64,000 nucleotides of DNA from Anthoceros angustus (lineage: Eukaryota > Plantae > Anthocerotophyta). This document shows, piece after piece, positions 1-64,000 of the stretch; position 1 is the first letter of the stretch, and each line of letters begins with the position of its first letter. The stretch lies in contig MU008217.1 in NCBI GenBank assembly GCA_010909165.1, positions 1 to 64,000 of the forward strand, given 5' to 3'. The notes beneath the pieces are model-generated. The model ran no database searches and was not told the origin of the DNA. It saw only the letters and a list, made by a program, of their open reading frames with translations. A program made the position numbers and the translations under genes.

Positions 1-611
1 CTTGATGAACTTTGTGGCGTGAACTAAGCAATGTCATGCCTAACACTTCAGCCCAAATGTGGTAACATGGTCATAGTTTTAACCTTATTAATGTTATGAA
101 TTGCGTGCTAAACTTACGTCAACTTAAGGCTGGCCTTGATTGCCACGAACCTCTTATGTTGAAGCTCACGATGGCCTCCCAAAACTGCTTCTTACTAAGG
201 GCTGTCCATGGCATTCAAACCTTCATCAAAAGGAGCCATTCGTATATCTAGTTTGCACACCAAATCTTTATCAAGGTGCCCAATATTGCAAGGTGCAAGC
301 GGCAATTAGGAGACCCCAATACTTTAGTGTAGATGAGACCATCCAATTTGTACACCTTTGACATAAAGAACTACTCATCATATTATGATTTCAAGGATGA
401 GCAATTTTACCGACCACTTATTGTTTGATAGATGTTCAATTTTACCTTTGACATAAAGAACTACTCATCATATTATGATTTCAAGGATGATTTCAAGGAC
501 TATCAAACTCGTGAGGCGGAAAAACAAAACCTAGACTTGTAGGATAAGAGGTTAGTCGTAGAGACTTTGCGTTGTGGAATAGCAGGTTTGACCTACTTTG
601 GGCTTTTCTTG

Positions 612-810
612 TGAATACATAAGCATTGGGATTCTCATCTTATCTCCATTTTCAAATTTCATGGCCAAACGGAAAAAACATTACTACAATAATATAAATT
701 AAACCACTAGCACAACAAAAATTAAGGCATAATAAAGCAAAAAAGAATAAAACATAAAACATAAAACAAAACAAAACCTCAAACAACGGCAAAACAAAAC
801 AATAGAGAAC
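612..810 (-). other. Intron remnant downstream of ALY exon 2
   Basis: GT start, then very T-rich minus strand (GTTTTGTTTTATGTTTTATG...). The lower boundary is approximate. Confidence 0.6.
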
Positions 811-880
811 CTTGTGCATCTTTTGAATCTTTAGACATTTGGCTTGGGCTCGATATCGATCCCCGCTCCTTCTTGTCTGG
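811..880 (-). pseudogene. ALY: ALY/REF exon 2 remnant (AGIDIEPKPNV*), followed by a GT donor
   Basis: 866-831 reads A G I D I E P K P N V stop. It aligns with plant ALY AGIETGTKLY[IV]S, and each mismatched codon is one base from a plausible ancestral codon. It ends ...CACAAG|GTTCTC at 810, like ...EDIK|GT. Copies also lie near 5640, 6200, 10740, 14800 and 16381. Confidence 0.65.
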
Positions 881-2190
881 TGGTAACACAATATCGGCCC
901 TTCTTGTTCTTCTTGTTTCCACCTTTAAATTTGCATACTAAATTGTGCTAACATGAAGTCTTGCGATATGCAATCTCGCATCACTTGACCATGGTACATC
1001 TAGCTCGCATCCAAGACCTCTGCACTTTTGACTATGGCGGAGGTCGTTGGTTTGCCATCAAGATCCAAGTGGTTGTTTGGCTTGGAAAGGATCTTTGGTA
1101 GAGACCGCATATTGATTATGACTTTTCACTCCATGGATGATCGCCTCCAGTTATGAAGGCTAGGTCTATGTTACAGACGACTCGGTTATATATCAATCGA
1201 TCTTACACCATTGCAATGGAAGATTAAGAAGGAGAAGTTACCGCTTTCTTTTATTGAGCTTGATCAAGTCAACGGCTTTTCTTTCATGGGGATGAATTTG
1301 TGGTGTTTAGCCCTCGTTCATGCATTTCATTAACATTATTGATTGATTGAAGATTATTTGTCTTGTTTGAATTTTACCTTTGCATTCGTCTAGACCATTT
1401 TACCGCAATCTATGTAGTTGCCATATTTCAATCCTATGACGAAGATCCGTCCTTAGTGGACTTGAATAAATTTCTTCTTCTTCCTCTTCATCTTCTTCAT
1501 TTGTTCTTCTTGTTCTTCTTGTTCTTCTTGTTCTTCTTCTTCCTCTTCATCTTCTTCATTTGTTCTTCTTGTTCTTCTTGTTCTTCTTCTTCCTCTTCAT
1601 CTTCTTCTCTTCTTCTTCTTCTTACAGTTATTAATTGTATTTAGAAAACTATGAAACTTCTTCACCTCTAGGTATTGTATGTATACATGTTTAGTATAGT
1701 GATTATTTTCACTAGCATAGTAAATAAAAATTATTTATTTAATTATTTATGTATGCTATTCTTTGCAACAACAAAGAAACATACAACCATATTACATACA
1801 TATCAGGCCCTTCTTGTTTCCACCTTTAAATTTGCATACTGACTAAATTGTGCTAACATGAAGTCTTGCGATATGCAATCTCGCATCACTTGACCATGGT
1901 ACACATCTAGCTCCGCATCCAAGACCTCTGCACTTTTGACTATGGCGGAGGTGGTTGGCTACCTCCTCTTCCTATAACATGTGCCGCCACACTCCCATTT
2001 GGGGTCGTTGGTTTGCCATCAAGATCAAACAACGGCAAAACAATAGAGACCGCATATTGATTATGACTTTTCACTCCATGGATGATCGCCTCCAGTTATG
2101 AAGGCTAGGTCTATGTTACAGACGACTCGGTTATATATCAATCGATCTTACACCATTGCAATGGAAGATTAAGAAGGAGAAGTTACCGCT

Positions 2191-2370
2191 TTCTTTCATG
2201 GGGATGAATTTGTGGTGTTTAGCCCTCGTTCATGCATTTCATTAACATTATTGATTGAAGATTATTTGTCTTGTTTGAATTTCTTTCATGGGGATGAATT
2301 TGTGGTGTTTAGCCCTCGTTCATGCATTTCATTAACATTATTGATTGATTGAAGATTATTTGTCTTGTTT
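2191..2370 (+). repeat. ~90-bp loop repeat (TTCTTTCATGGGGATGAATTTGTGG...GTCTTGTTTGAAT)
   Basis: TTCTTTCATG at 2191 and 2281. Repeated at ~36535-36770, 46615-46750 and 57235-57385. Confidence 0.88.
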
Positions 2371-2882
2371 GAATTTTACCTTTGCATTCGTCTAGACCAT
2401 TTTACCGCAATCTATGGAGTTGCCATATTTCAATCCTATGACGAAGATCCGTCCTTAGTGGACTTGAATAAATTTCTTCTTCTTCTCTTCATCTTCTTCA
2501 TTTGTTCTTCTTGTTCTTCTTGTTCTTCTTCTTCCTCTTCATCTTCTTCATTTGTTCTTCTTGTTCTTCTTGTTCTTCTTCTTCCTCTTCATCTTCTTCA
2601 TTTGTTCTTCTTCTTCTTCTTACAGTTATTAATTGTATTTAGAAAACTATGAAACTTCTTCACCTCTAGGTATTGTATGTATACATGTTTAGTATAGTGA
2701 TTATTTTCACTAGCATAGTAAATAAAAATTATTTATTTAATTATTTATGTATGCTATTCTTTGCAACAACAAAGAAACATACAACCATATTACATACATA
2801 TCAGGCCCTTCTTGTTTCCACCTTTAAAATTTGCATACTGACTAAATTGTGCTAACATGAAGTCTTGCGATATGCAATCTCG

Positions 2883-2936
2883 CATCACTTGACCATGGTA
2901 CACATCTAGCTCCGCATCCAAGACCTCTGCACTTTT
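2883..2936 (-). pseudogene. ALY: ALY/REF C-terminal motif remnant (KSAEVLDAELDVYHGQVM)
   Basis: Matches the REF-C/UAP56-binding motif pattern SAExLDAxLDxYH..M of plant ALY proteins. About 13 copies occur in the window (e.g. 15918-15959, 60718-60759), some frameshifted (e.g. ~985-1030). Confidence 0.88.
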
Positions 2937-3037
2937 GACTATGGCGGAGGTGGTTGGCTACCTCCTCTTCCTATAACATGTGCCGCCACACTCCCATTTG
3001 GGGTCGTTGGTTTCGCTTGTATTATCATTCGCATATC

Positions 3038-3108
3038 AATTGCCTCAATGGTCATTGGTTTGCCATCAAGATCAAGTGGTTGTTTGGCTTAGTGGTTCGA
3101 CGAGCTTT
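3038..3108 (-). pseudogene. ALY: ALY/REF RRM C-terminal remnant (LDGKPMTIEAI)
   Basis: 3070-3038 reads LDGKPMTIEAI, like the plant ALY (YNNVQ)LDGKPMKIEI. In the GATCCAAGTGG variant (near 1062, 12072, 60895) the upstream frame gives KPNNHLDLDGKPM. Confidence 0.8.
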
Positions 3109-3179
3109 CTTTTATTGAGCTTGATCAAGTCATCCACATTCTTTTATTGAGCTTGATCAAGTCATGCTTATTCTTTGCA

Positions 3180-3384
3180 ACAAAGTCGGGCTCAAGTATC
3201 ACAAAGTTAGAGACTTCAACTTAAAGCGTGAGACAAGATCAAACAACAAAATCCAAATGTAAAATTGAAGTTCAAAACCGCCCAATCATATATCGACAAG
3301 CTAGGCACAAGTAACACTAAATATGCACAAGTTCCACTAAGTACTTAAGCATCTAACTGCACACCAAAGTGTGTAGTTACAAAC
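3180..3384 (-). other. Intron remnant downstream of ALY exon 1
   Basis: Begins with GT directly after the AAG codon and is T-rich on the minus strand. The lower boundary is approximate. Confidence 0.65.
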
Positions 3385-3567
3385 CTTGGAGGTTAAGTAG
3401 GGTGCGATTCGTCTTGCTACACGGTTATCTGTAAGTCGTGTGTCAACACCTCCGGAGCCCGCCTCGAGAACCTCTCGTCCTTGGCAGCGATTCGTCCGCA
3501 TTGGATGACGAGCACCGCCACGCCTTGCTTTCTTTTTATTGAGCTTGATCAAGTCATCAAGACTCAA
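3385..3567 (-). pseudogene. ALY: ALY/REF-family exon 1 remnant (REF-N motif to APY..K, followed by a GT donor)
   Basis: Reads LSLDDLIKLNKKKARRGG...RRIAPYLTSK. This resembles ALY/REF N-termini (MSLDD[IL]IK..., R/G-rich linker, APYxxxK). The frame starts at TTG, not ATG. AAG|GTTTGT donor at 3384, then T-rich sequence. This is the only uninterrupted copy. Confidence 0.85.
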
Positions 3568-4015
3568 TTTGCCTTCCTTAGCGCAACGGTTCCATACATA
3601 TGGTGACCGCCACCGTGGTCCTTTGCCTTAAGCTTGATCAAGTCATGCTTATTCTTTTATTGAGCTTGATCAAGTCATCAAGACTCAATTTGCCTTCCTT
3701 AGCAGCGGTTTCATGCATGTGGTGACCGCCACCGTGGTCCTTTGCCTTAAGCTTGATCAAGTCATCCACATTCTTTTATTGAGCTTGATCAAGTCATCAA
3801 GACTTAGATGACCACAACGTTGTCTTAGGTCCTCGAGCAACTCATAATTATTGCTTGGTCGCGAGGAATTCATTATTGCTTGGATGTTTGTGCTCTATAA
3901 TGTATTTAAAATTGGTCAATATGGATTATTTTTGTGAAAATATATTCAACCGTGGTGGTTGCTCTCAATATCCTAGGCAAATCAATTGTTAACCGTTGCA
4001 AGGATGAGCAATTTT

Positions 4016-4357
4016 ACCGACCACTTATTGTTTGATAGATGTTCAATTTTACCGACCACTTATTGTTTGATAGATGTTCAATTTTATAGACCACTTATTG
4101 TTTGATAGATGTTCAATTTTATGGACCACTTATTGTTTGATAGATGTTCAATTTTATAGACCACTTATTGTTTGATAGATGTTCAATTTCTTGACCACTT
4201 ATTGTTTGATAGATGTTCAATTTTACCGAGCACTTATTGTTTGATAGATGTTCAATTTTATAGACCACTTATTGTTTGATAGATGTTCAATTTTACGAGC
4301 ACTTATTGTTTGATAGATGTTCAATTTTATACACCACTTATTGTTTGATAGATGTTC
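4016..4357 (+). repeat. 35-bp tandem array (CCACTTATTGTTTGATAGATGTTCAATTTT plus a variable ~5 nt), 10 units
   Basis: Period 35 (4021, 4056, 4091, 4126, 4161). Ordered sister arrays at ~8925-9335, 13065-13475, 25745-26170, 50715-51065 and 62570-62920. It is also the most abundant module of the scrambled domain. Confidence 0.97.
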
Positions 4358-4503
4358 ACGAGGTGGAGCGTGGCGAGGATGAGCAACAACAAACCACTTC
4401 TTGTTAGGCTTTCCTAAGGTGCAGCGTTGCGAAGGTGGGCAACTCAACCAACCACTTAGATGATGGCTCCTTTATAGATGACCTTGAATACTAGATACTA
4501 TAC

Positions 4504-4700
4504 AGGATATTTGATATTTCCTTTCTAGCATCTTCAAATTGTTTTCTTGTGATAGGTACTATAAATGGATATTTGATATTTCCTTTATGGCACGTTCAAG
4601 TTGTTTTCTTGTAATACATACTATTAATGGATATATGATATTTCCTTTCCAGATGTTCTAATTGTTTTCTTGTGGTAGCGATATTATATTTATATTTGGT
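4504..4700 (+). repeat. Degenerate ~62-bp triplet (GGATAT[T/A]TGATATTTCCTTT...TTGTTTTCTTGT)
   Basis: Three copies with true substitutions. Re-expanded at ~29690-29940, 51220-51480, 55665-55865 and 59745-60065. Confidence 0.9.
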
Positions 4701-4919
4701 ATTTTCTTTTGTGGTATCTTTGAATTTCTTTCACGCTCGTATTGGTCCATCTTAGTAACAAAATGGCATGGTTGTGCAACTTAATAATTAAGTCTCCTCA
4801 CTTGCCTTCTTAATGTACAACATGTCAATTGAGAACTAAACTACACCAAATCTTGTAGGAATAGAAGTTGATGTGGGAAATAGTTACCACGTGATTAGAC
4901 AAAGGCATTTGTTTCGTTC

Positions 4920-7417
4920 CTTGATGAACTTTGTGGCGTGAACTAAGCAATGTCATGCCTAACACTTCAGCCCAAATGTGGTAACATGGTCATAGTTTTA
5001 ACCTTATTAATGTTATGAATTGCGTGCTAAACTTACGTCAACTTAAGGCTGGCCTTGATTGCCACGAACCTCTTATGTTGAAGCTCACGATGGCCTCCCA
5101 AAACTGCTTCTTACTAAGGGCTGTCCATGGCATTCAAACCTTCATCAAAAGGAGCCATTCGTATATCTAGTTTGCACACCAAATCTTTATCAAGGTGCCC
5201 AATATTGCAAGGTGCAAGCGGCAATTAGGAGACCCCAATACTTTAGTGTAGATGAGACCATCCAATTTGTACACCTTTGACATAAAGAACTACTCATCAT
5301 ATTATGATTTCAAGGATGATTTCAAGGACTATCAAACTCGTGAGGCGGAAAACAAAACCTAGACTTGTAGGATAAGAGGTTAGTCGTAGAGACTTTGCGT
5401 TGTGGAATAGCGAGGTTTGACCTACTTTGGGCTTTTCTTGTGAATACATAAGCATTGGGATTCTCATCTTATCTCCATTTTCAAATTTCATGGCCAAACG
5501 GAAAAAACATTACTACAATAATATAAATTAAACCACTAGCACAACAAAAATTAAGGCATAATAAAGCAAAAAAAGAATAAAACATAAAACATAAAACAAA
5601 ACAAAACCTCAAACAACGGCAAAACAATAGAGAACCTTGTGCATCTTTGAATCTTTAGACATTTGGCTTGGGCTCGATATCGATCCCCGCTCCTTCTTGT
5701 TAGGCTTTCCTAAGGTGCAGCGTTGCGGTGGGCAACTCAACCAACCACTTAGATGATGGCTCCTTTATAGATGACCACAACGTTGTCTTAGGTCCTCGAG
5801 CAACTCATAATTATTGCTTGGATGTTTGTGCTCTATAATGTATTTAAAATTGGTCAATATGGATTATTTTCACTAGCATAGTAAATAAAAATTATTTATG
5901 TATGCTATTCTTTGCAACAAAGTCTTGTAGGATAAGAGGTTAGTCGTAGAGACTTTGCGTTGTGGAATAGCGAGGTTTGACCTACTTTGGGCTTTTCTTG
6001 TGAATACATAAGCATTGGGATTCTCATCTTATCTCCATTTTCAAATTTCATGGCCAAACGGAAAAAACATTACTACAATAATATAAATTAAACCACTAGC
6101 ACAACAAAAATTAAGGCATAATAAAGCAAAAAAAGAATAAAACATAAAACATAAAACAAAACAAAACCTCAAACAACGGCAAAACAATAGAGAACCTTGT
6201 GCATCTTTTGAATCTTTAGACATTTGGCTTGGGCTCGATATCGATCCCCGCTCCTTCTTGTTCTTCTTCTTGTTAGGCTTTCCTAAGGTGCAAGCGGCAA
6301 TTAGGAGACCCCAATACTTTAGTGTAGATGAGACCATCCAATTTGTACACCTTTGACATAAAGAACTACTCATCATATTATGATTTCAAGGATGATTTCA
6401 AGGATGATTTCAAGGATGATTTCAAGGATGATTTCAAGGATGAGCAATTTTACCTTTGCATTCGTCTAGACCATTTTACCGAGCACTTATTGTTTGATAG
6501 ATGTTCAATTTTACCTTTGCATTCGTCTAGACCATTTTACCGAGCACTTATTGTTTGATAGATGTTCAATTTTATACACCACTTATTGTTTGATAGATGT
6601 TCAATTTTACCTTTGCATTCGTCTAGACCATTTTACCGAGCACTTATTGTTTGATAGATGTTCAATTTATGGACCACTTATTGTTTGATAGATGTTCAAT
6701 TTATGGACCACTTATTGTTTGATAGATGTTCAATTTTACCTTTGCATTCGTCTAGACCATTTTACCGACCACTTATTGTTTGATAGATGTTCAATTTTAC
6801 CGAGCACTTATTGTTTGATAGATGTTCAATTTATGGACCACTTATTGTTTGATAGATGTTCAATTTTACCTTTGCATTCGTCTAGACCATTTTACCGACC
6901 ACTTATTGTTTGATAGATGTTCAATTTTATACACCACTTGTGGCTGCAAAGGAGTTTCTCAATAGGCTAGAGGTCGATGTGGTGTTTAGCCCTCGTTCAT
7001 GCATTTCATTAACATTATTGATTATGACTTTTCACTCCATGGATGATCGCCTCCAGTTATGAAGGCTAGGTCTATGTTACAGACGACTCGGTTATATATC
7101 AATCGATCTTACACCATTGCAATGGAAGATTATTTGTCTTGTTTGAATTTTACCGACCACTTATTGTTTGAATTTCTTTCATGGGGATGAATTTGTGGTG
7201 TTTAGCCCTCGTTCATGCATTTCATTAACATTATTGATTGATTGAAGATTATTTGTCTTGTTTGAATTTTACCTTTGCATTCGTCTAGACCATTTTACCG
7301 CAATCTATGTAGTTGCCATATTTCAATCCTATGAAGATCCGTCCTTAGTGGACTTGAATAAATTTCTTCTTCTTCCTCTTCATCTTCTTCATTTGTTCTT
7401 CTTGTTCTTCTTGTTCT

Positions 7418-7449
<32 letters not shown>

Positions 7450-9900
7450 TTCTTCTTCTTCTTCTTCTTCTTCTTCTTCTTCTTCTTCTTCTTCATCTTC
7501 TTCTTCTTCTTCCTCTTCATCTTCTTCTTCTCTTCTTCTTCTTCTTACAGTTATTAATTGTATTTAGAAAACTATGAAACTTCTTCACCTCTAGGTATTG
7601 TATGTATACATGTTTAGTATAGTGATTATTTTTCACTAGCATAGTAAATAAAAATTATTTATTTAATTATTTATGTATGCTATTCTTTGCAACAACAAAG
7701 AAACATACAACCATATTACATACATATCGGCCCTTCTTGTTTCCACCTTTAAAATTTGCATACTAAATTGTGCTAACATGAAGTCTTGCGATATGCAATC
7801 TCGCATCACTTGACCATGGTACATCTAGCTCGCATCCAAGACCTCTGCACTTTTGACTATGGCGGAGGTCGTTGGCTACCTCCTCTTCCTATAACATGTG
7901 CCACACTCCCATTTGGGGTCGTTGGTTTGCCGCTTGTATTATCATTCGCATATCAATTGCCTCAATGGTCATTGGTTTGCCATCAAGATCAAGTGGTTGT
8001 TTGGCTTAGTGGTTCGACGAGCTTTCTGCGATATGCAATCTCGCATCACTTGACCATGGTACACATCTAGCTCGCATCCAAGACCTCTGCACTTTTGACT
8101 ATGGCGGAGGTCGTTGGTTTGCCATCAAGATCAAACAACAAAATCCAAATGTAAAATTGAAGTTCAAAACCGCCCAATCATATATCGACAAGCTAGGGCA
8201 CAAGTAACACTAAATATGCACAAGTTCCACTAAGTACTTAAGCATCTAACGCACACCAAAGTGTGTAGTTACAAACCTTGGAGGTTAAGTAGGGTGCGAT
8301 TCGTCTTGCTACAGTTATTAATTGTATTTAGAAAACTATGAAACTTCTTCACCTCTAGGTATTGTATGTATACATGTTTAGTATAGTGATTATTTTTCAC
8401 TAGCATAGTAAATAAAAATTATTTATGTATGCTATTCTTTTATTGAGCTTGATCAAGTCATCAAGACTCAATTTGCCTTCCTTAGCAGCGGTTCCATACA
8501 TATGGTGACCGCCACCGTGGTCCTTTGCCTTAAGCTTGATCAAGTCATGCTTATTCTTTTATTGAGCTTGATCAAGTCATCAAGACTCAATTTGCCTTCC
8601 TTAGCAGCGGTTTCATGCATGTGGTGACCGCCACCGTGGTCCTTTGCCTTAAGCTTGATCAAGTCATCCACATTCTTTTATTGAGCTTGATCAAGTCATC
8701 AAGACTTAGATGACCACAACGTTGTCTTAGGTCCTCGAGCAACTCATAATTATTGCTTGGTCGCGAGGAATTCATTATTGCTTGGATGTTTGTGCTCTAT
8801 AATGTATTTAAAATTGGTCAATATGGATTATTTTTGTGAAAATATATTCAACCGTGGTGGTTGCTCTCAATATCCTAGGCAAATCAATTGTTAACCGTTG
8901 CAAGGATGATTTCAAGGATGAGCAATTTTACCGACCACTTATTGTTTGATAGATGTTCAATTTTACCGACCACTTATTGTTTGATAGATGTTCAATTTTA
9001 TAGACCACTTATTGTTTGATAGATGTTCAATTTTATGGACCACTTATTGTTTGATAGATGTTCAATTTTATAGACCACTTATTGTTTGATAGATGTTCAA
9101 TTTTACCACTTATTGTTTGATAGATGTTCAATTTTATAGACCACTTATTGTTTGATAGATGTTCAATTTTAGACCACTTATTGTTTGATAGATGTTCAAT
9201 TTTACCGAGCACTTATTGTTTGATAGATGTTCAATTTTATAGACCACTTATTGTTTGATAGATGTTCAATTTTACCACTTATTGTTTGATAGATGTTCAA
9301 TTTTATGGACCACTTATTGTTTGATAGATGTTCACGAGGTGGAGCGTGGCGAGGATGAGCAACAACAAACCACTTCTTGTTAGGCTTTCCTAAGGTGCAG
9401 CGTTGCGAAGGTGGGCAACTCAACCAACCACTTAGATGATGGCTCCTTTATAGATGACCTTGAATACTAGATACTATACAGGATATTTGATATTTCCTTT
9501 CTAGCATCTTCAAATTGTTTTCTTGTGATAGGTACTATAAATGGATATTTGATATTTCCTTTATGGCACGTTCAAGTTGTTTTCTTGTAATACATACTAT
9601 TAATGGATATATGATATTTCCTTTCTAGCATCTTCAAATTGTTTTCTTGTGGTAGCGATATTATATTTATATTTGGTATTTTCTTTTGTGGTATCTTTGA
9701 ATTTCTTTCACGCTCGTATTGGTCCATCTTAGTAACAAAATGGCATGGTTGTGCAACTTAATAATTAAGTCTCCTCACTTGCCTTCTTAATGTACAACAT
9801 GTCAATTGGAGAACTAAACTACACCAAATCTTTGTAGGAATAGAAGTTGATGTGGGAAATAGTTACCACACGTGATTAGACAAAGGCATTTGTTTCGTTC
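4920..9900 (+). repeat. Macro-unit 2 (4981 bp)
   Basis: Same start word at 4920, next at 9901. Same terminal modules (35-bp array, ~62-bp triplet, TTCACGCTCG...GTTTCGTTC). Internal order partly rearranged. Confidence 0.9.
5383..5445 (-). pseudogene. ALY: Possible ALY exon 3 remnant (KVG...RYS...YD)
   Basis: Follows the intron-2 remnant. GTA GGT (5425-5420), CGC TAT TCC (5412-5404) and TAC GAC (5388-5383) echo plant ALY EVGxLKRYSIHYD, but a frameshift is needed. Weak. Confidence 0.4.
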
Positions 9901-12900
9901 CTTGATGAACTTTGTGGCGTGAACTAAGCAATGTCATGCCTAACACTTCAGCCCAAATGTGGTAACATGGTCATAGTTTTAACCTTATTAATGTTATGAA
10001 TTGCGTGCTAAACTTACGTCAACTTAAGGCTGGCCTTGATTGCCACGAACCTCTTATGTTGAAGCTCACGATGGCCTCCCAAAACTGCTTCTTACTAAGG
10101 GCTGTCCATGGCATTCAAACCTTCATCAAAAGGAGCCATTCAGATATCTAGTTTCATGCATTTCATTAACATTATTGATTGAAGATTATTTGTCTTGTTT
10201 GAATTTCTTTCACGCTCGTATTGGTCCATCTTAGTAACAAAATGGCATGGTTGTGCAACTTAACAAAACCACTTCTTGTTAGGCTTTCCTAAGGTGCAAG
10301 CGGCAATTAGGAGACCCCAATACTTTAGTGTAGATGAGACCATCCAATTTGTACACCTTTGACATAAAGAACTACTCATCATATTATGATTTCAAGGATG
10401 ATTTCAAGGACTATCAAACTCGTGAGGCGGAAAACAAAACCTAGACTTGTAGGATAAGAGGTTAGTCGTAGAGACTTTGCGTTGTGGAATAGCGAGGTTT
10501 GACCTACTTTGGGCTTTTCTTGTGAATACATAAGCATTGGGATTCTCATCTTATCTCCATTTTCAAATTTCATGGCCAAACGGAAAAAACATTACTACAA
10601 TAATATAAATTAAACCACTAGCACAACAAAATTAAGGCATAATAAAGCAAAAAAAGAATAAAACATAAAACATAAAACATAAAACATAAAACATAAAACA
10701 AAACAAAACCTCAAACAACGGCAAAACAATAGAGAGAACCTTGTGCATCTTTTGAATCTTTAGACATTTGGCTTGGGCTCGATATCGATCCCCGCTCCTT
10801 CTTGTCTGGTGGTAACACAATATCAAGGCGATGCTCGCCGTGCATTGAACTTGAGAATTTATGGTCTTGGTAATGACATTGTTGCACCACTTGTGGCTGC
10901 AAAGGAGTTTCTCAATAGGCTAGAGGTCGATGTGGTGTTTAGCCCTCGTTCATGCATTTCATTAACATTATTGATTGATTGATTGATTGATTGATTATGA
11001 CTTTTCACTCCATGGATGATCGCCTCCAGTTATGAAGGCTAGGTCTATGTTACAGACGACTCGGTTATATATCAATCGATCTTACACCATTGCAATGGAA
11101 GATTAAGAAGGAGAAGTTACACCTTTGACATAAAGAACTACTCATCATATTATGATTTCAAGGATGAGCAACTTAACAAAACCACTTCTTGTTGTTCTTC
11201 TTCTCTTCTTCTTCATCTTCTTCATCTTCTTCTTTCATGGGGATGAATTTGTGGTGTTTAGCCCTCGTTCATGCATTTCATTAACATTATTGATTGATTG
11301 AAGATTATTTGTCTTGTTTGAATTTTACCTTTGCATTCGTCTAGACCATTTTACCGCAATCTATGTAGTTGCCATATTTCAATCCTATGAAGATCCGTCC
11401 TTAGTGGACTTGAATAAATTTCTTCTTCTTCCTCTTCTTCTTGTTCTTCTTGTTCTTCTTCTTCTTCATCTTCTTCTTCTTCTTCTTCTTCTTCTTCTTC
11501 CTCTTCATCTTCTTCATCTTCTTCTTCTTCTTCTTACAGTTATTAATTGTATTTAGAAAACTATGAAACTTCTTCACCTCTAGGTATTGTATGTATACAT
11601 GTTTAGTATAGTGATTATTTTCACTAGCATAGTAAATAAAAATTATTTATTTAATTATTTATGTATGCTATTCTTTGCAACAACAAAGAAACATACAACC
11701 ATATTACATACATATGGTGACCGCCACCGTGGTCCTTTGCCTTAAGCTTGATCAAGTCATCCACATTCTTTTATTGAGCTTGATCAAGTCATGCTTATTC
11801 TTTTATTGAGCTTGATCAAGTCATCCACATTCTTTTATTGAGCTTGATCAAGTCATCCACATTCTTTTATTGAGCTTGATCAAGTCATCCACATTCTTTT
11901 ATTGAGCTTGATCAAGTCATGCTTATTCTTTTATTGAGCTTGATCAAGTCATGCTTATTCTTCTTCCTCTTCCTATAACATGTGCCACACTCCCATTTGG
12001 GGTCGTTGGTTTGCCGCTTGTATTATCATTCGCATATCAATTGCCTCAATGGTCATTGGTTTGCCATCAAGATCCAAGTGGTTGTTTGGCTTAGTGGTTC
12101 GACGAGCTTTTGCAACAACAAAATCCAAATGTAAAATTGAAGTTCAAAACCGCCCAATCATATATCGACAAGCTAGGGCACAAGTAACACTAAATATGCA
12201 CAAGTTCCACTAAGTACTTAAGCATCAAGTCATCAAGATCAAACAACAAAATCCAAATGTAAAATTGAAGTTCAAAACCGCCCAATCATATATCGACAAG
12301 CTAGGCACAAGTAACACTAAATATGCACAAGTTCCACTAAGTACTTAAGCATCTAACGCACACCAAAGTGTGTAGTTACAAACCTTGGAGGTTAAGTAGG
12401 GTGCGATTCGTCTTGCTACAGTTATTAATTGTATTTAGAAAACTATGAAACTTCTTCACCTCTAGGTATTGTATGTATACATGTTTAGTATAGTGATTAT
12501 TTTCACTAGCATAGTAAATAAAAATTATTTATGTATGCTATTCTTTGCAACAACAAACCACTTCTTGTTCTTCTTCTTTTATTGAGCTTGATCAAGTCAT
12601 CAAGACTCAATTTGCCTTCCTTAGCAGCAGCGGTTCCATACATATGGTGACCGCCACCGTGGTCCTTTGCCTTAAGCTTGATCAAGTCATGCTTATTCTT
12701 TTATTGAGCTTGATCAAGTCATCAAGACTCAATTTGCCTTCCTTAGCAGCGGTTTCATGCATGTGGTGACCGCCACCGTGGTCCTTTGCCTTAAGCTTGA
12801 TCAAGTCATCCACATTCTTTTATTGAGCTTGATCAAGTCATCAAGACTTAGATGACCACAACGTTGTCTTAGGTCCTCGAGCAACTCATAATTATTGCTT

Positions 12901-14040
12901 GGTCGCGAGGAATTCATTATTGCTTGGATGTTTGTGCTCTATAATGTATTTAAAATTGGTCAATATGGATTATTTTTGTGAAAATATATTCAACCGTGGT
13001 GGTTGCTCTCAATATCCTAGGCAAATCAATTGTTAACCGTTGCAAGGATGATTTCAAGGATGAGCAATTTTACGAGCACTTATTGTTTGATAGATGTTCA
13101 ATTTTACCGACCACTTATTGTTTGATAGATGTTCAATTTTATAGACCACTTATTGTTTGATAGATGTTCAATTTTATGGACCACTTATTGTTTGATAGAT
13201 GTTCAATTTTATAGACCACTTATTGTTTGATAGATGTTCAATTTTAGACCACTTATTGTTTGATAGATGTTCAATTTTAGACCACTTATTGTTTGATAGA
13301 TGTTCAATTTTATAGACCACTTATTGTTTGATAGATGTTCAATTTTACGAGCACTTATTGTTTGATAGATGTTCAATTTTATACACCACTTATTGTTTGA
13401 TAGATGTTCAATTTTACCACTTATTGTTTGATAGATGTTCAATTTTATACACCACTTATTGTTTGATAGATGTTCACGAGGTGGAGCGTGGCGAGGATGA
13501 GCAACAACAAACCACTTCTTGTTAGGCTTTCCTAAGGTGCAGCGTTGCGAAGGTGGGCAACTCAACCAACCACTTAGATGATGGCTCCTTTATAGATGAC
13601 CTTGAATACTAGATACTATACAGGATATTTGATATTTCCTTTCTAGCATCTTCAAATTGTTTTCTTGTGATAGGTACTATAAATGGATATTTGATATTTC
13701 CTTTATGGCACGTTCAAGTTGTTTTCTTGTAATACATACTATTAATGGATATATGATATTTCCTTTCTAGCATCTTCAAATTGTTTTCTTGTGGTAGCGA
13801 TATTATATTATATTTGGTATTTTCTTTTGTGGTATCTTTGAATTTCTTTCACGCTCGTATTGGTCCATCTTAGTAACAAAATGGCATGGTTGTGCAACTT
13901 AATAATTAAGTCTCCTCACTTGCCTTCTTAATGTACAACATGTCAATTGAGAACTAAACTACACCAAATCTTTGTAGGAATAGAAGTTGATGTGGGAAAT
14001 AGTTACCACACGTGATTAGACAAAGGCATTTGTTTCGTTC
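9901..14040 (+). repeat. Macro-unit 3 (4140 bp)
   Basis: Start word at 9901, next at 14041. Shorter, with internal deletions and a rare insert at ~10820-10930. Confidence 0.9.
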
Positions 14041-14897
14041 CTTGATGAACTTTGTGGCGTGAACTAAGCAATGTCATGCCTAACACTTCAGCCCAAATGT
14101 GGTAACATGGTCATAGTTTTAACCTTATTAATGTTATGAATTGCGTGCTAAACTTACGTCAACTTAAGGCTGGCCTTGATTGCCACGAACCTCTTATGTT
14201 GAAGCTCACGATGGCCTCCCAAAACTGCTTCTTACTAAGGGCTGTCCATGGCATTCAAACCTTCATCAAAAGGAGCCATTCGTATATCTAGTTTGCACAC
14301 CAAATCTTTATCAAGGTGCCCAATATTGCAAGGTGCAAGCGGCAATTAGGAGACCCCAATACTTTAGTGTAGATGAGACCATCCAATTTGTACACCTTTG
14401 ACATAAAGAACTACTCATCATATTATGATTTCAAGGATGATTTCAAGGACTATCAAACTACGTGAGGCGGAAAACAAAACCTAGACTTGTAGGATAAGAG
14501 GTTAGTCGTAGAGACTTTGCGTTGTGGAATAGCGAGGTTTGACCTACTTTGGGCTTTTCTTGTGAATACATAAGCATTGGGATTCTCATCTTATCTCCAT
14601 TTTCAAATTTCATGGCCAAACGGAAAAAACATTACTACAATAATATAAATTAAACCACTAGCACAACAAAAATTAAGGCATAATAAAGCAAAAAAAGAAT
14701 AAAACATAAAACATAAAACAAAACAAAACCTCAAACAACAAAAATTAAGGCATAATAAAGCAAAAAAAGAATAAAACATAAAACAAAACAATAGAGAGAA
14801 CCTTGTGCATCTTTTGAATCTTTAGACATTTGGCTTGGGCTCGATATCGATCCCCGCTCCTTCTTGTCTGGTGGTAACACAATATCGGCGGAGGTCG

Positions 14898-15060
14898 TTG
14901 GTTTGCCGCTTGTATTATCATTCGCATATCAATTGCCTCAATGGTCATTGGTTTGCCGCTTGTATTATCATTCGCATATCAATTGCCTCAATGGTCATTG
15001 GTTTGCCGCTTGTATTATCATTCGCATATCAATTGCCTCAATGGTCATTGGTTTGCCGCT
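14898..15060 (+). repeat. 50-bp tandem repeat (TTGGTTTGCCGCTTGTATTATCATTCGCATATCAATTGCCTCAATGGTCA)
   Basis: Period 50 (14901, 14951, 15001, 15051). Also at ~16540-16735 and ~30375-30535. Confidence 0.95.
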
Positions 15061-15905
15061 TGGAAAGGATCTTTGGTAGAGACCGCATATTGATTATGAC
15101 TTTTCACTCCATGGATGATCGCCTCCAGTTATGAAGGCTAGGTCTATGTTACAGACGACTCGGTTATATATCAATCGATCTTACACCATTGCAATGGAAG
15201 ATTAAGAAGGAGAAGTTACACCTTTGACATAAAGAACTACTCATCATATTATGATTTCAAGGATGAGCAATTTTACCGAGCACTTATTGTTTGAATTTCT
15301 TTCATGGGGATGAATTTGTGGTGTTTAGCCCTCGTTCATGCATTTCATTAACATTATTGATTGATTGAAGATTATTTGTCTTGTTTGAATTTTACCTTTG
15401 CATTCGTCTAGACCATTTTACCGCAATCTATGTAGTTGCCATATTTCAATCCTATGACGAAGATCCGTCCTTAGTGGACTTGAATAAATTTCTTCTTCTT
15501 CCTCTTCATCTTCTTCATTTGTTCTTCTTGTTCATTTGTTCTTCTTGTTCTTCTTCTTCCTCTTCATCTTCTTCATTTGTTCTTCTTGTTCTTCTTGTTC
15601 TTCTTCTTCCTCTTCATCTTCTTCATCTGCATCTTCTTCTTCTTACAGGTTATTAATTGTATTTAGAAAACTATGAAACTTCTTCACCTCTAGGTATTGT
15701 ATGTATACATGTTTAGTATAGTGATTATTTTTCACTAGCATAGTAAATAAAAATTATTTATTTAATTATTTATGTATGCTATTCTTTGCAACAACAAAGA
15801 AACATACAACCATATTACATACATATCAGGCCCTTCTTGTTTCCACCTTTAAATTTGCATACAGCTAAATTGTGCTAACATGAAGTCTTGCGATATGCAA
15901 TCTCG

Positions 15906-18784: not shown

Positions 18785-18812
18785 TTCTTCTTCTTCTTCT
18801 TCTTCTTCTTCT

Positions 18813-18859
<47 letters not shown>

Positions 18860-47400: not shown

Positions 47401-47468
47401 AGACTTAGATGATGGCTCCTTTATAGATGACCACAACGTTGTCTTAGGTCCTCGAGCAACTCATAATT

Positions 47469-56600: not shown

Positions 56601-58369
56601 GATCAAGTCATGCTTATTCTTTTATTGAGCTTGATCAAGTCATGCTTATTCTTTTATTGAGCTTGATCAAGTCATCAAGACTTAGATGACCACAACGTTG
56701 TCTTAGGTCCTCGAGCAACTCATAATTATTGCTTGGTCGCGAGGAATTCATTATTGCTTGGATGTTTGTGCTCTATAATGTATTTAAAATTGGTCAATAT
56801 GGATTATTTTTGTGAAAATATATTCAACCGTGGTGGTTGCTCTCAATATCCTAGGCAAATCAATTGTTAACCGTTGCAAGGATGATTTCAAGGATGATTT
56901 CAAGGATGAGCAATTTTACCGAGCACTTATTGTTTGATAGATGTTCAATTTTATAGACCACTTATTGTTTGATAGATGTTCAATTTTATAGACCACTTAT
57001 TGTTTGATAGATGTTCAATTTTACCTTTGCATTCGTCTAGACCATTTTACCGAGCACTTATTGTTTGATAGATGTTCAATTTTATAGACCACTTATTGTT
57101 TGATAGATGTTCAATTTTACCGCAATCTATGTAGTTGCCATATTTCAATCCTATGACGAAGATCCGTCCTTAGTGGACTTGAATAAATTTCTTCTTCCTC
57201 TTCATCTTCTTCTTCATCTTCTTCTTCTTGTTTGAATTTCTTTCATGGGGATGAATTTGTGGTGTTTAGCCCTCGTTCATGCATTTCATTAACATTATTG
57301 ATTGATTGATTGATTGAAGATTATTTGTCTTGTTTGAATTTCTTTCATGGGGATGAATTTGTGGTGTTTAGCCCTCGTTCATGCATGTGGTGACCGCCAC
57401 CGTGGTCCTTTGCCTTAAGCTTGATCAAGTCATCAAGACTCAATTGCCTTAAGCTTGATCAAGTCATCCACATTCTTTTATTGAGCTTGATCAAGTCATC
57501 AAGACTTAGATGACCACAACGTTGTCTTAGGTCCTCGAGCAACTCATAATTATTGCTTGGTCGCGAGGAATTCATTATTGCTTGGATGTTTGTGCTCTAT
57601 AATGTATTTAAAATTGGTCAATATGGATTATTTTTGTGAAAATATATTCAACCGTGGTGGTTGCTCTCAATATCCTAGGCAAATCAATTGTTAACCGTTG
57701 CAAGGATGATTTCAAGGATGATTTCAAGGACTATCAAACAACAAAATCCAAATGTAAAATTGAACATCTATCAAACAACAAAATCCAAATGTAAAATTGA
57801 ACATCTATCAAACAACAAAACCACTTCTTGTTTGAATTTTACCTTTGCATTCGTCTAGACCATTTTACCGAGCACTTATTGTTTGATAGATGTTCAATTT
57901 TATACACCACTTATTGTTTGATAGATGTTCAATTTTACCTTTGCATTCGTCCGCATTGGATGACGAGCACCGCCACGCCTTGCTTTCTTTTATTGAGCTT
58001 GATCAAGTCATGCTTATTCTTTTATTGAGCTTGATCAAGTCATCCACATTCTTTTATTGAGCTTGATCAAGTCATCAAGACTTAGATGACCACAACGTTG
58101 TCTTAGGTCCTCGAGCAACTCATAATTATTTATGTATGCTATTCTTTGCAACAACAAAATCCAAATGTAAAATTGAACATCTATCAAACAACAAACCACT
58201 TCTTGTTCTTCTTCTTGTTTGAATTTCTTTCATGGGGATGAATTTGTGGTGTTTAGCCCTCGTTCATGCATTTCATTAACATTATTGATTGATTGATTGA
58301 TTGAAGATTATTTGTCTTGTTTGAATTTCTTTCATGGGGATGAATTTGTGGTGTTTAGCCCTCGTTCAT

Positions 58370-58590
58370 GCATGTGGTGACCGCCACCGTGGTCCTTTGC
58401 CTTAAGCTTGATCAAGTCATCAAGACTCAATTTGCCTTCCTTAGCAGCGGTTTCATGCATGTGGTGACCGCCACCGTGGTCCTTTGCCTTAAGCTTGATC
58501 AAGTCATCAAGACTCAATTTGCCTTCCTTAGCAGCGGTTTCATGCATGTGGTGACCGCCACCGTGGTCCTTTGCCTTAAGCTTGATCAAG
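58370..58590 (+). repeat. 87-bp tandem repeat carrying the REF-N codons on the minus strand
   Basis: The minus-strand ORF repeats the 29-aa unit HETAAKEGKLSLDDLIKLKAKDHGGGHHM. Also at ~27455-27630, 47880-48110 (86-bp variant) and 61270-61640 (mixed 87/119 bp). Confidence 0.93.
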
Positions 58591-59462
58591 TCATGCTTAT
58601 TCTTTTATTGAGCTTGATCAAGTCATCCACATTCTTTTATTGAGCTTGATCAAGTCATCAAGACTCAATTTGCCTTCCTTAGCAGCGGTTTCATGCATTT
58701 CATGGCCAAACGGAAAAAACATTACTACAATAATATAAATTAAACCACTAGCACAACAAAATCCAAATGTAAAATTGAACATCTATCAAACAACAAACCA
58801 CTTCTTGTTTGAATTTTACCTTTGCATTCGTCTAGACCATTTTACCGAGCACTTATTGTTTGATAGATGTTCAATTTTATGGACCACTTATTGTTTGATA
58901 GATGTTCAATTTTATAGACCACTTATTGTTTGATAGATGTTCAATTTTACCTTTGCATTCGTCTAGACCATTTTACCGACCACTTATTGTTTGATAGATG
59001 TTCTAATTGTTTTCTTGTAATACATACTATTAATGGATATATGATATTTCCTTTCTAGCATCTTCAAATTGTTTTCTTGTGAATACATAAGCATTGGGAT
59101 TCTCATCTTCTTCATCTTCTTCTTCATCTTCTTCATCTTCTTCTTCTTGTTTGAATTTTACCTTTGCATTCGTCTAGACCATTTTACCGAGCACTTATTG
59201 TTTGAATTTCTTTCATGGGGATGAATTTGTGGTGTTTAGCCCTCGTTCATGCATGTGGTGACCGCCACCGTGGTCCTTTGCCTTAAGCTTGATCAAGTCA
59301 TGCTTATTCTTTTATTGAGCTTGATCAAGTCATCAAGACTCAATTTGCCTTCTTAATGTACAACATGTCAATTGAGAACTAAACTACACCAAATGTCTAA
59401 GAAACAAAGTCGTGGCTCAAGTATCACAAAGTTAGAGACTTCAACTTAAACTGTGAGACAAG

Positions 59463-59579
59463 ATCAAACAATAAGTGGTCTATAAAAATTGAACATCTAT
59501 CAAACAATAAGTGGTCTATAAAAATTGAACATCTATCAAACAATAAGTGGTCTATAAAAATTGAACATCTATCAAACAA
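59463..59579 (-). repeat. Inverted copies of the 35-bp repeat (three 36-bp units)
   Basis: ATCAAACAATAAGTGGTCTATAAAAATTGAACATCT is the reverse complement of the 35-bp unit with one extra A. ATCAAACAA recurs at 59463, 59499, 59535 and 59571. Confidence 0.95.
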
Positions 59580-60119
59580 CAAACCACTTCTTGTTCTTCT
59601 TCTTGTTTGAATTTTACCGACCACTTATTGTTTGATAGATGTTCAATTTTATAGACCACTTATTGTTTGAATTTTACCGAGCACTTATTGTTTGATAGAT
59701 GTTCAATTTTACCGAGCACTTATTGTTTGATAGATGTTCTAATTGTTTTCTTGTGATAGGTACTATAAATGGATATATGATATTTCCTTTATGGCACGTT
59801 CAAGTTGTTTTCTTGTAATACATACTATTAATGGATATATGATATTTCCTTTCCAGATGTTCTAATTGTTTTCTTGTAATACATACTATTAATGGATATA
59901 TGATATTTCCTTTCCAGATGTTCTAATTGTTTTCTTGTAATACATACTATTAATGGATATATGATATTTCCTTTATGGCACGTTCAAGTTGTTTTCTTGT
60001 GATAGGTACTATAAATGGATATATGATATTTCCTTTATGGCACGTTCAAGTTGTTTTCTTGTGAATACATAAGCATTGGGATTCTCATCTTCTTCTTCCT
60101 CTTCATCTTCTTCATCTTC

Positions 60120-63100
60120 TTCATGCATTTCATTAACATTATTGATTGATTGAAGATTATTTGTCTTGTTTGAATTTTACCTTTGCATTCGTCTAGACCA
60201 TTTTACCGCAATCTATGTAGTTGCCATATTTCAATCCTATGACGAAGATCCGTCCTTAGTGGACTTGAATAAATTTCTTCTTCTTCCTCTTCATCTTCTT
60301 CTTCTTCTTGTTCTTCTTGTTCTTCTTCTCTTCTTCTTCTTCTTCTTCTTCTTCTTCTTCTTCTTCTTCTTCTTCTTCTTCTTCTTCTCTTCTTCTTCAT
60401 CTTCTTCTTCTTCTTCTTCATCTTCTTCTTCTTCATCTTCTTCTTCTTACAGTTATTAATTGTATTTAGAAAACTATGAAACTTCTTCACCTCTAGGTAT
60501 TGTATGTATACATGTTTAGTATAGTGATTATTTTCACTAGCATAGTAAATAAAAATTATTTATTTAATTATTTATGTATGCTATTCTTTGCAACAACAAA
60601 GAAACATACAACCATATTACATACATATCAGGCCCTTCTTGTTTCCACCTTTAAAATTTGCATACTAAATTGTGCTAACATGAAGTCTTGCGATATGCAA
60701 TCTCGCATCACTTGACCATGGTACACATCTAGCTCCGCATCCAAGACCTCTGCACTTTTGACTATGGCGGAGGTCGTTGGCTACCTCCTCTTCCTATAAC
60801 ATGTGCCGCCACACTCCCATTTGGGGTCGTTGGTTTGCCGCTTGTATTATCATTCGCATATCAATTGCCTCAATGGTCATTGGTTTGCCATCAAGATCCA
60901 AGTGGTTGTTTGGCTTAGTGGTTCGACGAGCTTTCTTTTATTGAGCTTGATCAAGTCATGCTTATTCTTTGCAACAAAGTCGTGGCTCAAGTATCACAAA
61001 GTTAGAGACTTCAACTTAAACTGTGAGACAAGATCAAACAACAAAATCCAAATGTAAAATTGAAGTTCAAAACCGCCCAATCATATATCGACAAGCTAGG
61101 CACAAGTAACACTAAATATGCACAAGTTCCACTAAGTACTTAAGCATCTAACTGCACACCAAAGTGTGTAGTTACAAACCTTGGAGGTTAAGTAGGGTGC
61201 GATTCGTCTTGCTACACTTGCTTTCTTTTATTGAGCTTGATCAAGTCATCCACATTCTTTTATTGAGCTTGATCAAGTCATCAAGACTCAATTTGCCTTC
61301 CTTAGCAGCGGTTTCATGCATGTGGTGACCGCCACCGTGGTCCTTTGCCTTAAGCTTGATCAAGTCATGCTTATTCTTTTATTGAGCTTGATCAAGTCAT
61401 CAAGACTCAATTTGCCTTCCTTAGCAGCGGTTTCATGCATGTGGTGACCGCCACCGTGGTCCTTTGCCTTAAGCTTGATCAAGTCATGCTTATTCTTTTA
61501 TTGAGCTTGATCAAGTCATCAAGACTCAATTTGCCTTCCTTAGCAGCGGTTTCATGCATGTGGTGACCGCCACCGTGGTCCTTTGCCTTAAGCTTGATCA
61601 AGTCATCAAGACTCAATTTGCCTTCCTTAGCAGCGGTTTCATGCATTTCATTAACATTATTGATTGAAGATTATTTGTCTTGTTTGAATTTTACCTTTGC
61701 ATTCGTCTAGACCATTTTACCGAGCACTTATTGTTTGATAGATGTTCAATTTTACCTTTGCATTCGTCTAGACCATTTTACCGAGCACTTATTGTTTGAT
61801 AGATGTTCAATTTTACCGCAATCATATATCGACAAGCTAGGCACAAGTAACACTAAATATGCACAAGTTCCACTAAGTACTTAAGCATCTAACTGCACAC
61901 CAAAGTGTGTAGTTACAAACCTTGGAGGTTAAGTAGGGTGCGATTCGTCTTGCTACACTTATTGTTTGATAGATGTTCAATTTTACCTTTGCATTCGTCT
62001 AGACCATTTTACCGAGCACTTATTGTTTGATAGATGTTCAATTTTACCTTTGCATTCGTCCGCATTGGATGACGAGCACCGCCACGCCTTGCTTTCTTTT
62101 ATTGAGCTTGATCAAGTCATCAAGACTCAATTTGCCTTCCTTAGCAGCGGTTTCATGCATGTGGTGACCGCCACCGTGGTCCTTTGCCTTAAGCTTGATC
62201 AAGTCATGCTTATTCTTTTATTGAGCTTGATCAAGTCATCAAGACTCAATTTGCCTTCCTTAGCAGCGGTTTCATGCATGTGGTGACCGCCACCGTGGTC
62301 CTTTGCCTTAAGCTTGATCAAGTCATCCACATTCTTTTATTGAGCTTGATCAAGTCATCAAGACTTAGATGACCACAACGTTGTCTTAGGTCCTCGAGCA
62401 ACTCATAATTATTGCTTGGTCGCGAGGAATTCATTATTGCTTGGATGTTTGTGCTCTATAATGTATTTAAAATTGGTCAATATGGATTATTTTTGTGAAA
62501 ATATATTCAACCGTGGTGGTTGCTCTCAATATCCTAGGCAAATCAATTGTTAACCGTTGCAAGGATGAGCAATTTTACCGACCACTTATTGTTTGATAGA
62601 TGTTCAATTTTACCGACCACTTATTGTTTGATAGATGTTCAATTTTATAGACCACTTATTGTTTGATAGATGTTCAATTTTATGGACCACTTATTGTTTG
62701 ATAGATGTTCAATTTTATAGACCACTTATTGTTTGATAGATGTTCAATTTCTTGACCACTTATTGTTTGATAGATGTTCAATTTTACCGAGCACTTATTG
62801 TTTGATAGATGTTCAATTTTATAGACCACTTATTGTTTGATAGATGTTCAATTTTACCGAGCACTTATTGTTTGATAGATGTTCAATTTTATACACCACT
62901 TATTGTTTGATAGATGTTCACGAGGTGGAGCGTGGCGAGGATGAGCAACTTAACAAACCACTTCTTGTTAGGCTTTCCTAAGGTGCAACGTTGCAAGGAT
63001 GAGCAACTTAACAAACCACTTAGATGATGGCTCCTTTATAGATGACCTTGAATACTAGATACTATACAGGATATTTGATATTTCCTTTCTAGCATCTTCA

Positions 63101-63230
63101 AATTGTTTTCTTGTGATAGGTACTATAAATGGATATTTGATATTTCCTTTATGGCACGTTCAAGTTGTTTTCTTGTAATACATACTATTAATGGATATAT
63201 GATATTTCCTTTCTAGCATCTTCAAATTTC
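60120..63230 (+). repeat. Re-ordered part-unit resembling 2330-4680 of macro-unit 1
   Basis: Mostly the same module order, with some scrambled insertion at ~61.6-62.1 kb. ORF pairs 2365/60166 and 2673/60500. The 35-bp cassette has the same variant order, including the rare CTTGA unit. Confidence 0.8.
60705..61290 (-). pseudogene. ALY: ALY remnant in the re-ordered part-unit
   Basis: SLDDLIKL ~61290, exon 1 end 61180 with GT at 61179, in-frame NNHLDLDGKPMTIEAI ~60900-60860, REF-C 60759-60718. Confidence 0.72.
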
Positions 63231-64000
63231 ATGGCCAAACGGAAAAAACATTACTACAATAATATAAATTAAACCACTTCTTGTTCTTCTTGTTCTTCTT
63301 CATCTTCTTCTTGTTCTTCTTGTTAGGCTTTCCTAAGGTGCAAGGATGATTTCAAGGATGAGCAATTTTACCTTTGCATTCGTCTAGACCATTTTACCGA
63401 CCACTTATTGTTTGATAGATGTTCAATTTTACCTTTGCATTCGTCTAGACCATTTTACCGACCACTTATTGTTTGATAGATGTTCAATTTTATGGACCAC
63501 TTATTGTTTGATAGATGTTCAATTTTACCGAGCACTTATTGTTTGATAGATGTTCAATTTTACCTTTGCATTCGTCTAGACCATTTTACCGACCACTTAT
63601 TGTTTGATAGATGTTCTAATTGTTTTCTTGTGAATACATAAGCATTGGGATTCTCATCTTCTTCTCTTCTTCTTCCTCTTCATCTTCTTCTTGTTCTTCT
63701 TCATCTTCTTCTTCTTCTTCTTCTTGTTTGAATTTTACCGACCACTTATTGTTTGATAGATGTTCAATTTTATACACCACTTATTGTTTGATAGATGTTC
63801 AATTTTATACACCACTTATTGTTTGATAGATGTTCAATTTTACCGCAATCATATATCGACAAGCTAGGGCACAAGTAACACTAAATATGCACAAGTTCCA
63901 CTAAGTACTTAAGCATCTAACTGCACACCAAAGTGTGTAGTTACAAACCTTGGAGGTTAAGTAGGGTGCGATTCGTCTTGCTACACTTATTGTTTGATAG

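Follow-up and report, generated by a model that had tools for sequence, protein, structure and literature searches.

How satellite arrays change is debated, with unequal exchange on one side and break-induced or microhomology-based repair on the other, and most of the evidence to date is limited to a small number of junctions in each array. Repair through microhomology has been invoked for human centromeres and built into a break-induced replication model of satellites (PMC8997354), and the summary given in the same source has it invoked for maize CEN10 as well; in Drosophila it has been invoked for the hybrid satellites Rsp-like/1.688 (PMC7403614). Microhomology-mediated tandem duplication (MTD), whose pathway in yeast is Okazaki-fragment maturation, has been put forward as a general origin of tandem repeats (PNAS 2021, PMC8639346; bioRxiv 10.64898/2026.02.28.708716). 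Here we analyse an array in a 64,000-nucleotide stretch of DNA from Anthoceros angustus (assembly GCA_010909165.1, contig MU008217.1, positions 1 to 64,000; this whole stretch is called the window below), for which an earlier, sequence-only reading had proposed assembly from a few kb of modules joined at short microhomologies. We find 241 distinct types of non-homologous junction, most of them on short words shared by otherwise dissimilar parents, and consider it rather likely that the array is a real land-plant macrosatellite with a 4-5 kb unit, remodelled by many separate microhomology-based replication or repair events.

Results

A closed vocabulary in a regular and a scrambled part

All 64,000 bases of the window are made up of 4,361 distinct 12-mers and 7,003 distinct 20-mers, and repeated 12-mers cover ~99.7% of its positions. 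The vocabulary is thus closed, as had been claimed, ~4.4 kb of distinct sequence filling 64 kb. Its growth curve is nearly flat past ~16 kb, with 3,827 distinct 12-mers reached by 16 kb and 4,309 by 60 kb. The reverse complement is also present for only 69 of the 4,361 12-mers, and hence the vocabulary is nearly all in one orientation. The GC content is 35-40% and the plus strand is T-rich.

The layout was derived from a map of thirteen anchor words, offset peaks and the jumping alignment described in the next section, and falls into two parts:

1-18790, plus strand: regular part of the array, four units with a common anchor order (anchor map, offset peaks 4142/4919/4981, jumping alignment).
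18791-64000, plus strand: scrambled part, with unchanged vocabulary and ~99.1% identical to the regular units.

The units of the regular part run head to tail in a single orientation, as in a tandem satellite or macrosatellite, with anchors at 128, 5047, 10028 and 14168 that give periods of 4919, 4981 and 4140 bp. Each of them already carries private rearrangements, with ~313 bp per non-homologous junction. Past ~18.8 kb the common unit order is gone while the vocabulary is kept, the spacing is ~135 bp per non-homologous junction, and a few modules are amplified as others vanish: over the last 45 kb, 138-bp bins of the unit range from 36-38 copies to 0.1-0.6 copies.

Most junctions lie on short words shared by dissimilar parents

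Junctions were called with a jumping alignment in which matches are scored, mismatches penalised and jumps to any reference position charged at a fixed cost. The whole window served as query against a reference made of positions 1-18,790 and a reversed copy of one unit, alignment along the self diagonal being disallowed; a single 4,140-bp unit as reference was dropped, for it gave spurious short tiles because some modules are missing from each unit. Microhomology was taken for each junction type as the longest exact word common to both parents at the join, over all parent copies, and the random-join null came from simulated joins put through the same all-copy search. Exact extension from the alignment's own parents was abandoned, since the choice of parent copy is arbitrary and microhomology was therefore underestimated. 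From a total of 777 alignment jumps we set apart small indels, jumps whose approximate homology extended over 25 nt or more (n = 94), switches of copy or of register within sub-repeat arrays whose flanks could still be aligned (n = 196) and jumps beside very short segments. True non-homologous junctions amounted to 393 events of 241 distinct types, retained by a local alignment filter because their parents showed no detectable similarity over the 30 nt past the common word. Their microhomology compares with the null as follows:

Median microhomology: observed 9 nt, random-join null 0-1 nt.
Types with at least 4 nt: observed 86%, null 3.2%.
Types with at least 6 nt: observed 75%, null 0.5%.
Types with at least 10 nt: observed 41%, null 0.07%.
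Types with 0-1 nt: observed 7%, null about 79%.

The mode is 8-11 nt, and microhomology is 2 nt or less in only 11% of types. Breakpoint microhomology therefore goes beyond that of random joins, as in the class comprising microhomology-mediated end joining (MMEJ), microhomology-mediated break-induced replication (MMBIR) and fork stalling and template switching (FoSTeS). The sequence-only reading had suggested comparing junction overlaps with a null; run here as a junction census, that comparison puts the overlaps far beyond chance. Its statement that almost every junction sits on a shared word is correct for most types (those with at least 4 nt), but not for the 7% with 0-1 nt. The excess survived removal of TC-rich contexts and held separately for single-copy junctions, multi-copy junctions and long-flanked junctions of the scrambled zone, where cost ratios from 1.5 to 10 gave 179-191 types, with the median still 9 nt and 90-92% of them reaching 4 nt or more. 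Moreover, the triple alignments of 12 randomly drawn junctions were clean, each matching the left parent at 30/30 positions on its left side and the right parent at 30/30 on its right side, and with the parents unlike outside the shared word. The excess over the null and parents unrelated outside the shared word give strong support to microhomology-mediated joining.

All seven words first offered as examples occur where they had been placed. The census reproduces four of them exactly (ACCTTTG at 444-450, TAGAGA at 2044-2049, GCGATTCGTC at 18056-18065 and AGATGTTC at 29676-29683) and puts a jump with GCTTG at 15058, while direct reading of the two parent contexts bears out CATTATTG at 47690-47697. 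The seventh, CAATC at 61819-61823, is a possible parse, but CCG at 61816-61818, with one junction, is more economical. Three of these junctions are described by the following features:

444-450, plus strand: ACCTTTG junction from the jumping alignment, 7 nt of maximal microhomology, leading from the end of the 35-bp-repeat region to a module that normally stands behind another ...CACCTTTG context.
18056-18065, plus strand: GCGATTCGTC junction, 10 nt, with a copy of the junction also at 26772.
29676-29683, plus strand: AGATGTTC junction, 8 nt, of a type with at least 7 recurrences, among them those at 34646, 37967, 54903, 55660 and 56239.

Hub words branch and orientation is kept

Context counts agree with the claim that a few hub words branch into many modules: GATGAGCAA (n = 119) has 5 left and 12 right contexts in 26 combinations, AATTTTACC (n = 222) has 8 left and 7 right contexts, and TTCTTGT (n = 246) occurs in 93 context combinations. 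Further hub features are:

20421-20431, plus strand: one use of hub AGGATGAGCAA, whose core is GATGAGCAA and which is the microhomology of 12 different junction types.
175 copies, for example 3107-3176 and 27210-27450: hub TTGATCAAGTCAT, which holds the 10-nt palindrome CTTGATCAAG including a TGATCA site.

Despite the 175 copies of TTGATCAAGTCAT, the window has no inversion junction that uses palindrome CTTGATCAAG, and the sole robust inverted block is the following:

59463-59574, minus strand: reversed stretch of the 35-bp repeat, 112 nt long, with ATCAAACAA (9 nt) at the entry junction and AACAA (5 nt) at the exit junction.

Further reverse-strand matches at 57798, 58174 and 58776 are 13-16 nt long, too short to be trusted. 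Inverted words of 8-9 nt and of 10-12 nt are about half as frequent in the reference as direct ones.

Jump distances are nearly uniform in unit coordinates, and the junctions thus do join distant parts of the unit, as had been proposed. A twofold excess is confined to jumps of 250 bp or less, and simple short-range slippage is therefore insufficient to account for the joins. Duplication-like and deletion-like jumps are nearly balanced (87 vs 80). The parental adjacencies of single-copy junctions are only slightly nearer than random (mean quantile 0.39-0.43), the median distance being 1.9-5.5 kb.

Triplet runs are also present inside the array, and act as junction sites, TC-rich contexts being found in 19 junction types:

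22452-22717, 23542-23817, 18785-18969 and 28202-28455: impure TTC/CTT runs of up to ~95 triplets.

Tandem duplications account for a minority of joins

Tandem Repeats Finder returned 293 rows for the window, with periods of 3, 12, 25, 32, 35, 50, 53, 61-62, 87, 96, 119 and more, and many of these tandem arrays are 100% identical. The 25-bp unit can be followed from its source, for in each of the three regular units looked at it is present once, between 12-nt direct repeats (ATTATTGCTTGG), at 3847 (3847-3883), 8749 and 12891, and in the scrambled zone in 2, 3, 6, 6, 6 and 9 perfect copies:

27705-27866, 29361-29522, 37071-37220 and 47466-47690: 25-bp arrays of the scrambled zone.
47466-47697, plus strand: the 25-bp array with 9 identical copies, which ends in the CATTATTG junction.

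This array is a textbook case of MTD followed by expansion. Clean full tandem duplications make up 14 of the 241 junction types, their periods ranging from 12 to 87 bp; MTD thus occurs here for a minority of joins only, and purely nested tandem duplications were rejected as a general model, since they account for these 14 types alone. A second expansion, of slippage type, involves the 12-bp unit ATGATTTCAAGG, which has two copies in the regular units and 3-7 copies, always perfect, at many sites of the scrambled zone:

6380-6443, 19233-19320, 32904-32991 and others: the 12-bp unit ATGATTTCAAGG.

Joins were made and re-copied in several rounds

The 241 types divide into 164 present once and 77 present 2-16 times each, and 40 of these 77 had been copied along with another junction (the lengths of the copied blocks are underestimates, extension stopping at small indels). 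Joins were therefore made and then re-duplicated, some with their neighbours, in several rounds. A single-copy neighbour lies within 40 nt of 32% of the single-copy junctions, compared to 16-21% expected, and a quarter of the inter-junction segments are 40 nt or shorter; isolated single-copy junctions nevertheless prevail, 77 of 101 runs having size 1. This modest clustering probably reflects some compound events.

Point mutation has contributed little: there are 8 private substitutions vs the 164 single-copy junction types, and 728 of the 772 single-copy 12-mers sit at alignment jumps. Novelty in the array hence comes from re-joining rather than from substitution, with joins outnumbering substitutions by about twenty to one in its recent history.

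The vocabulary is present in independent reads

Independent data were the short Logan contigs of public runs, searched with the stretch 57301-63300 and yielding pieces of 58-109 nt. In a short-read set from 2019, 39% of the sampled 31-mers of this stretch were present, 29 of its 30 bins were covered, and 631 of the 824 pieces were at least 99% alike. Word depth ranged from hundreds to ~10,000, with rare variants at ~6-16. This coverage at high depth indicates that the vocabulary, as distinct from the order of the junctions, is real and highly repeated in independent data, and the sequence is thus a high-copy one, for which copy number can be only roughly inferred from depth; further arrays of the same family are probably present in the genome, the word depth hinting at hundreds of copies genome-wide. 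In this set the modules are also joined in other ways (57905 to 61955, 62750 to 62894 and 62857 to 62894). Window and short-read contigs differ by 1 bp at a dozen places, and depth falls to 0-7 in two of the 200-bp bins into which the test stretch was divided. In three other runs, matches were limited to the TTC run at 63273-63300 and are uninformative on the array.

The unit may stem from an ALY/REF-like gene

The unit probably comes from a decayed gene segment. Two stop-free stretches point to its possible nature:

3340-3627, minus strand: stop-free stretch with a LSLDDLIKLNKK motif and a weak Pfam FYTT match (E 0.04-0.07, below significance).
2793-2957, minus strand: stop-free stretch with a SAEVLDAELDVYHGQ motif and a match to Pfam PF13865 (FoP_duplication; E 0.046-0.084, below the curated cut-off).

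The first, whose LSLDDLIKLNKK motif is also encoded by the 175-copy hub TTGATCAAGTCAT, matched only REF2 in the PDB (E 1.4, below significance) and is likely to be what is left of the N-terminal UAP56-binding motif in an ALY/REF-type gene. The second has copies at 1806-1958 (minus strand) and elsewhere, and it is the motif LDAELDVYH in minus-strand stop-free stretches that gives the weak FoP_duplication match, to a domain that is C-terminal in ALY/REF proteins (Pfam PF13865). The weak matches of UAP56-binding type and FoP type are collinear on the minus strand. No RRM domain was matched in the stop-free stretches of the unit, and phmmer with the 76-aa ALY-like open reading frame (ORF) against 1.8 billion representatives returned three long repetitive proteins only and no ALY-like protein. 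Pfam searches of the longest ORFs gave no transposon or other solid domain, and Rfam no RNA family anywhere in the window. Derivation of the unit from a decayed ALY/REF-like gene segment is therefore put no higher than plausible.

Discussion

The closed vocabulary, the junctions with their excess of microhomology, the bias in orientation and the nesting of junctions in copied blocks are direct observations on the window. In the mechanism that we propose, each event would begin with a 3' end, or a resected end, that re-pairs at a word of ~4-28 nt (median 9) common by chance to unrelated parts of the unit. Re-pairing backward would produce duplications, including microhomology-mediated tandem duplications later grown by slippage, and re-pairing forward would produce deletions. 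Every new join would put its word into a new context, by which a few words may have become repeatedly used hubs, and events would pile up over several rounds with strand orientation kept. Template switching at stalled or broken forks, out-of-register break-induced replication, MTD or end joining could each provide the molecular pathway.

Several observations weigh against this account. The 7% of junction types that are blunt or nearly blunt do not fit it, and parental copies show weak locality, which is unfavourable to simple short-range slippage. Module order and copy number are those given by the assembly, and, as only 39% of the sampled 31-mers were found in the short-read set, many single-copy junctions are without independent support. 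Sequence alone, finally, cannot separate the candidate pathways. Remodelling by many separate microhomology-based events nevertheless seems to us rather likely, and three other explanations were set against it.

The first, which we regard as unlikely, is that tens of kb of patchwork were made in one go, either by polymerase-theta (TEBICHI) end joining or in one or a few catastrophic, chromoanasynthesis-like episodes in which serial template switching used a single local template. Microhomology at most junctions would agree with this, and the many inter-junction segments of 40 nt or less and the clustering of single-copy neighbours would fit some multi-switch events. But theta-mediated joining typically uses microhomologies of 1-6 nt, and those of polymerase-theta fillers are mostly shorter than in the window, whereas the median here is 9 nt and the mode 8-11 nt. 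The sequence-only reading had named polymerase theta, which these lengths do not favour, and an enzyme is in any case not to be inferred from such sequence. It had also envisaged tens of kb of iterated switching that kept to a single local template. Against a single run stand the 77 types re-copied after they had formed, 40 of them with a neighbour, which need several rounds, together with the isolation of most single-copy runs and parental adjacencies that, at medians of 1.9-5.5 kb, are barely nearer than random. Inversions, which are usual in serial template switching, are almost absent.

It is quite unlikely, in the second place, that exchange was ordinarily homologous, the hub words being conserved cores of old related sub-repeats that recombined by unequal crossing-over or gene conversion, and the microhomology mere residual homology. 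Nested sub-repeats do fill the unit, with periods of 12, 25, 32, 35, 50, 53, 61-62 and 119 bp; 94 jumps have at least 25 nt of approximate homology and 196 are copy switches or register changes; and many junction types trace to few hubs. These homologous classes, however, were removed before the count, and the parents of the 241 remaining types are dissimilar in the 30 nt past the word, with jump distances spread over the whole unit. Homologous recombination in eukaryotes, moreover, usually needs tracts longer than the 8-11 nt of these words.

Third, the mosaic could stem from the assembler or from chimeras of library amplification, the true locus being a regular array, which we hold to be very unlikely. 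The 1-bp differences from the short-read contigs and the two test bins at depth 0-7 would accord with an artefact. Long-read assemblers, on the other hand, would be expected to change reads over overlaps of kb length, whereas the joins here come every 135 bp on words of 9 nt; chimeras arising at random would be lost in the consensus. A third of the junction types recur in different surroundings, the short-read set has high depth in 29 of 30 bins and carries alternative joins of the modules, and the strict orientation bias and clean signatures of tandem duplication look biological. Random shattering and re-ligation (chromothripsis-like, by nonhomologous end joining) is excluded by the orientation bias, with one robust inverted block only although inverted words are available, together with the microhomology, 2 nt or less in just 11% of types.

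If the assembly is right, the window offers 241 independent junctions in a small, nearly mutation-free vocabulary, from which the microhomology spectrum, the orientation rule, the balance of duplication and deletion, the growth of hubs and the ratio of rearrangement to point mutation could be measured directly. Should it be wrong, the window would be a useful caution for anyone reading repeats in noisy long-read assemblies. The window also illustrates a route from a decayed gene segment to a satellite, as far as the plausible gene origin goes. A wider suggestion, tentative and in our view doubtful, is that this plant lineage has an unusually active microhomology-driven pathway of restart or re-pairing that scrambles gene-derived macrosatellites genome-wide. 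Were that so, structural joins would be at least twenty times as frequent as substitutions in such arrays, which would be natural recorders of template-switch events, and their satellites would evolve in a distinct way, as a walk through a small word graph instead of by the homogenising of monomers.

Comparison with known systems

MTD resembles what is seen here in that a pair of short direct repeats flanks a segment and gives a head-to-tail duplicate that can be expanded, as in the 25-bp array, where a 12-nt pair leads to 2-9 copies, and in several other arrays of the window with periods of 12-87 bp. It differs in that only 14 of the 241 types are clean tandem duplications, most joins linking parts 0.5-2 kb apart and about half being deletion-like. 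With the satellites of maize CEN10, the Drosophila Rsp-like/1.688 satellites and the break-induced replication model of satellites the array shares change by joins at short shared words and not through in-register unequal exchange alone, expansion and deletion through out-of-register restart, and hybrid repeats that then spread. In CEN10 and Rsp-like/1.688 there are a handful to dozens of events per megabase array, unlike the 241 joins in 64 kb of the window, where over 45 kb there is one join per 135 bp, mostly on 8-11 nt. Plant polymerase-theta end joining with filler, as at T-DNA and CRISPR breaks in Arabidopsis (PMC10923293, PMC9299229), also makes patchwork microhomology joins with short templated pieces, but its fillers are tens of nt at one break, whereas the joins of the window span tens of kb, arose in several rounds and were re-copied. 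The replicative microhomology-joining model of 2009 (cited in PMC7403614) likewise allows several switches per event and both duplications and deletions; inverted segments are common in such events and the outcome is usually a single complex rearrangement, in contrast to the window, where orientation is almost always kept and most joins look separate. The principle of microhomology-based satellite remodelling is hence already published (PMC8997354, PMC7403614, bioRxiv 10.64898/2026.02.28.708716), the present array being an extreme example, and of the earlier description of an unusual mode it is the density that stands. Altogether, the principle is known, and what is unusual in this array is 241 joins in 64 kb with a mode of 8-11 nt, strict direct orientation, hub words and joins that outnumber substitutions.

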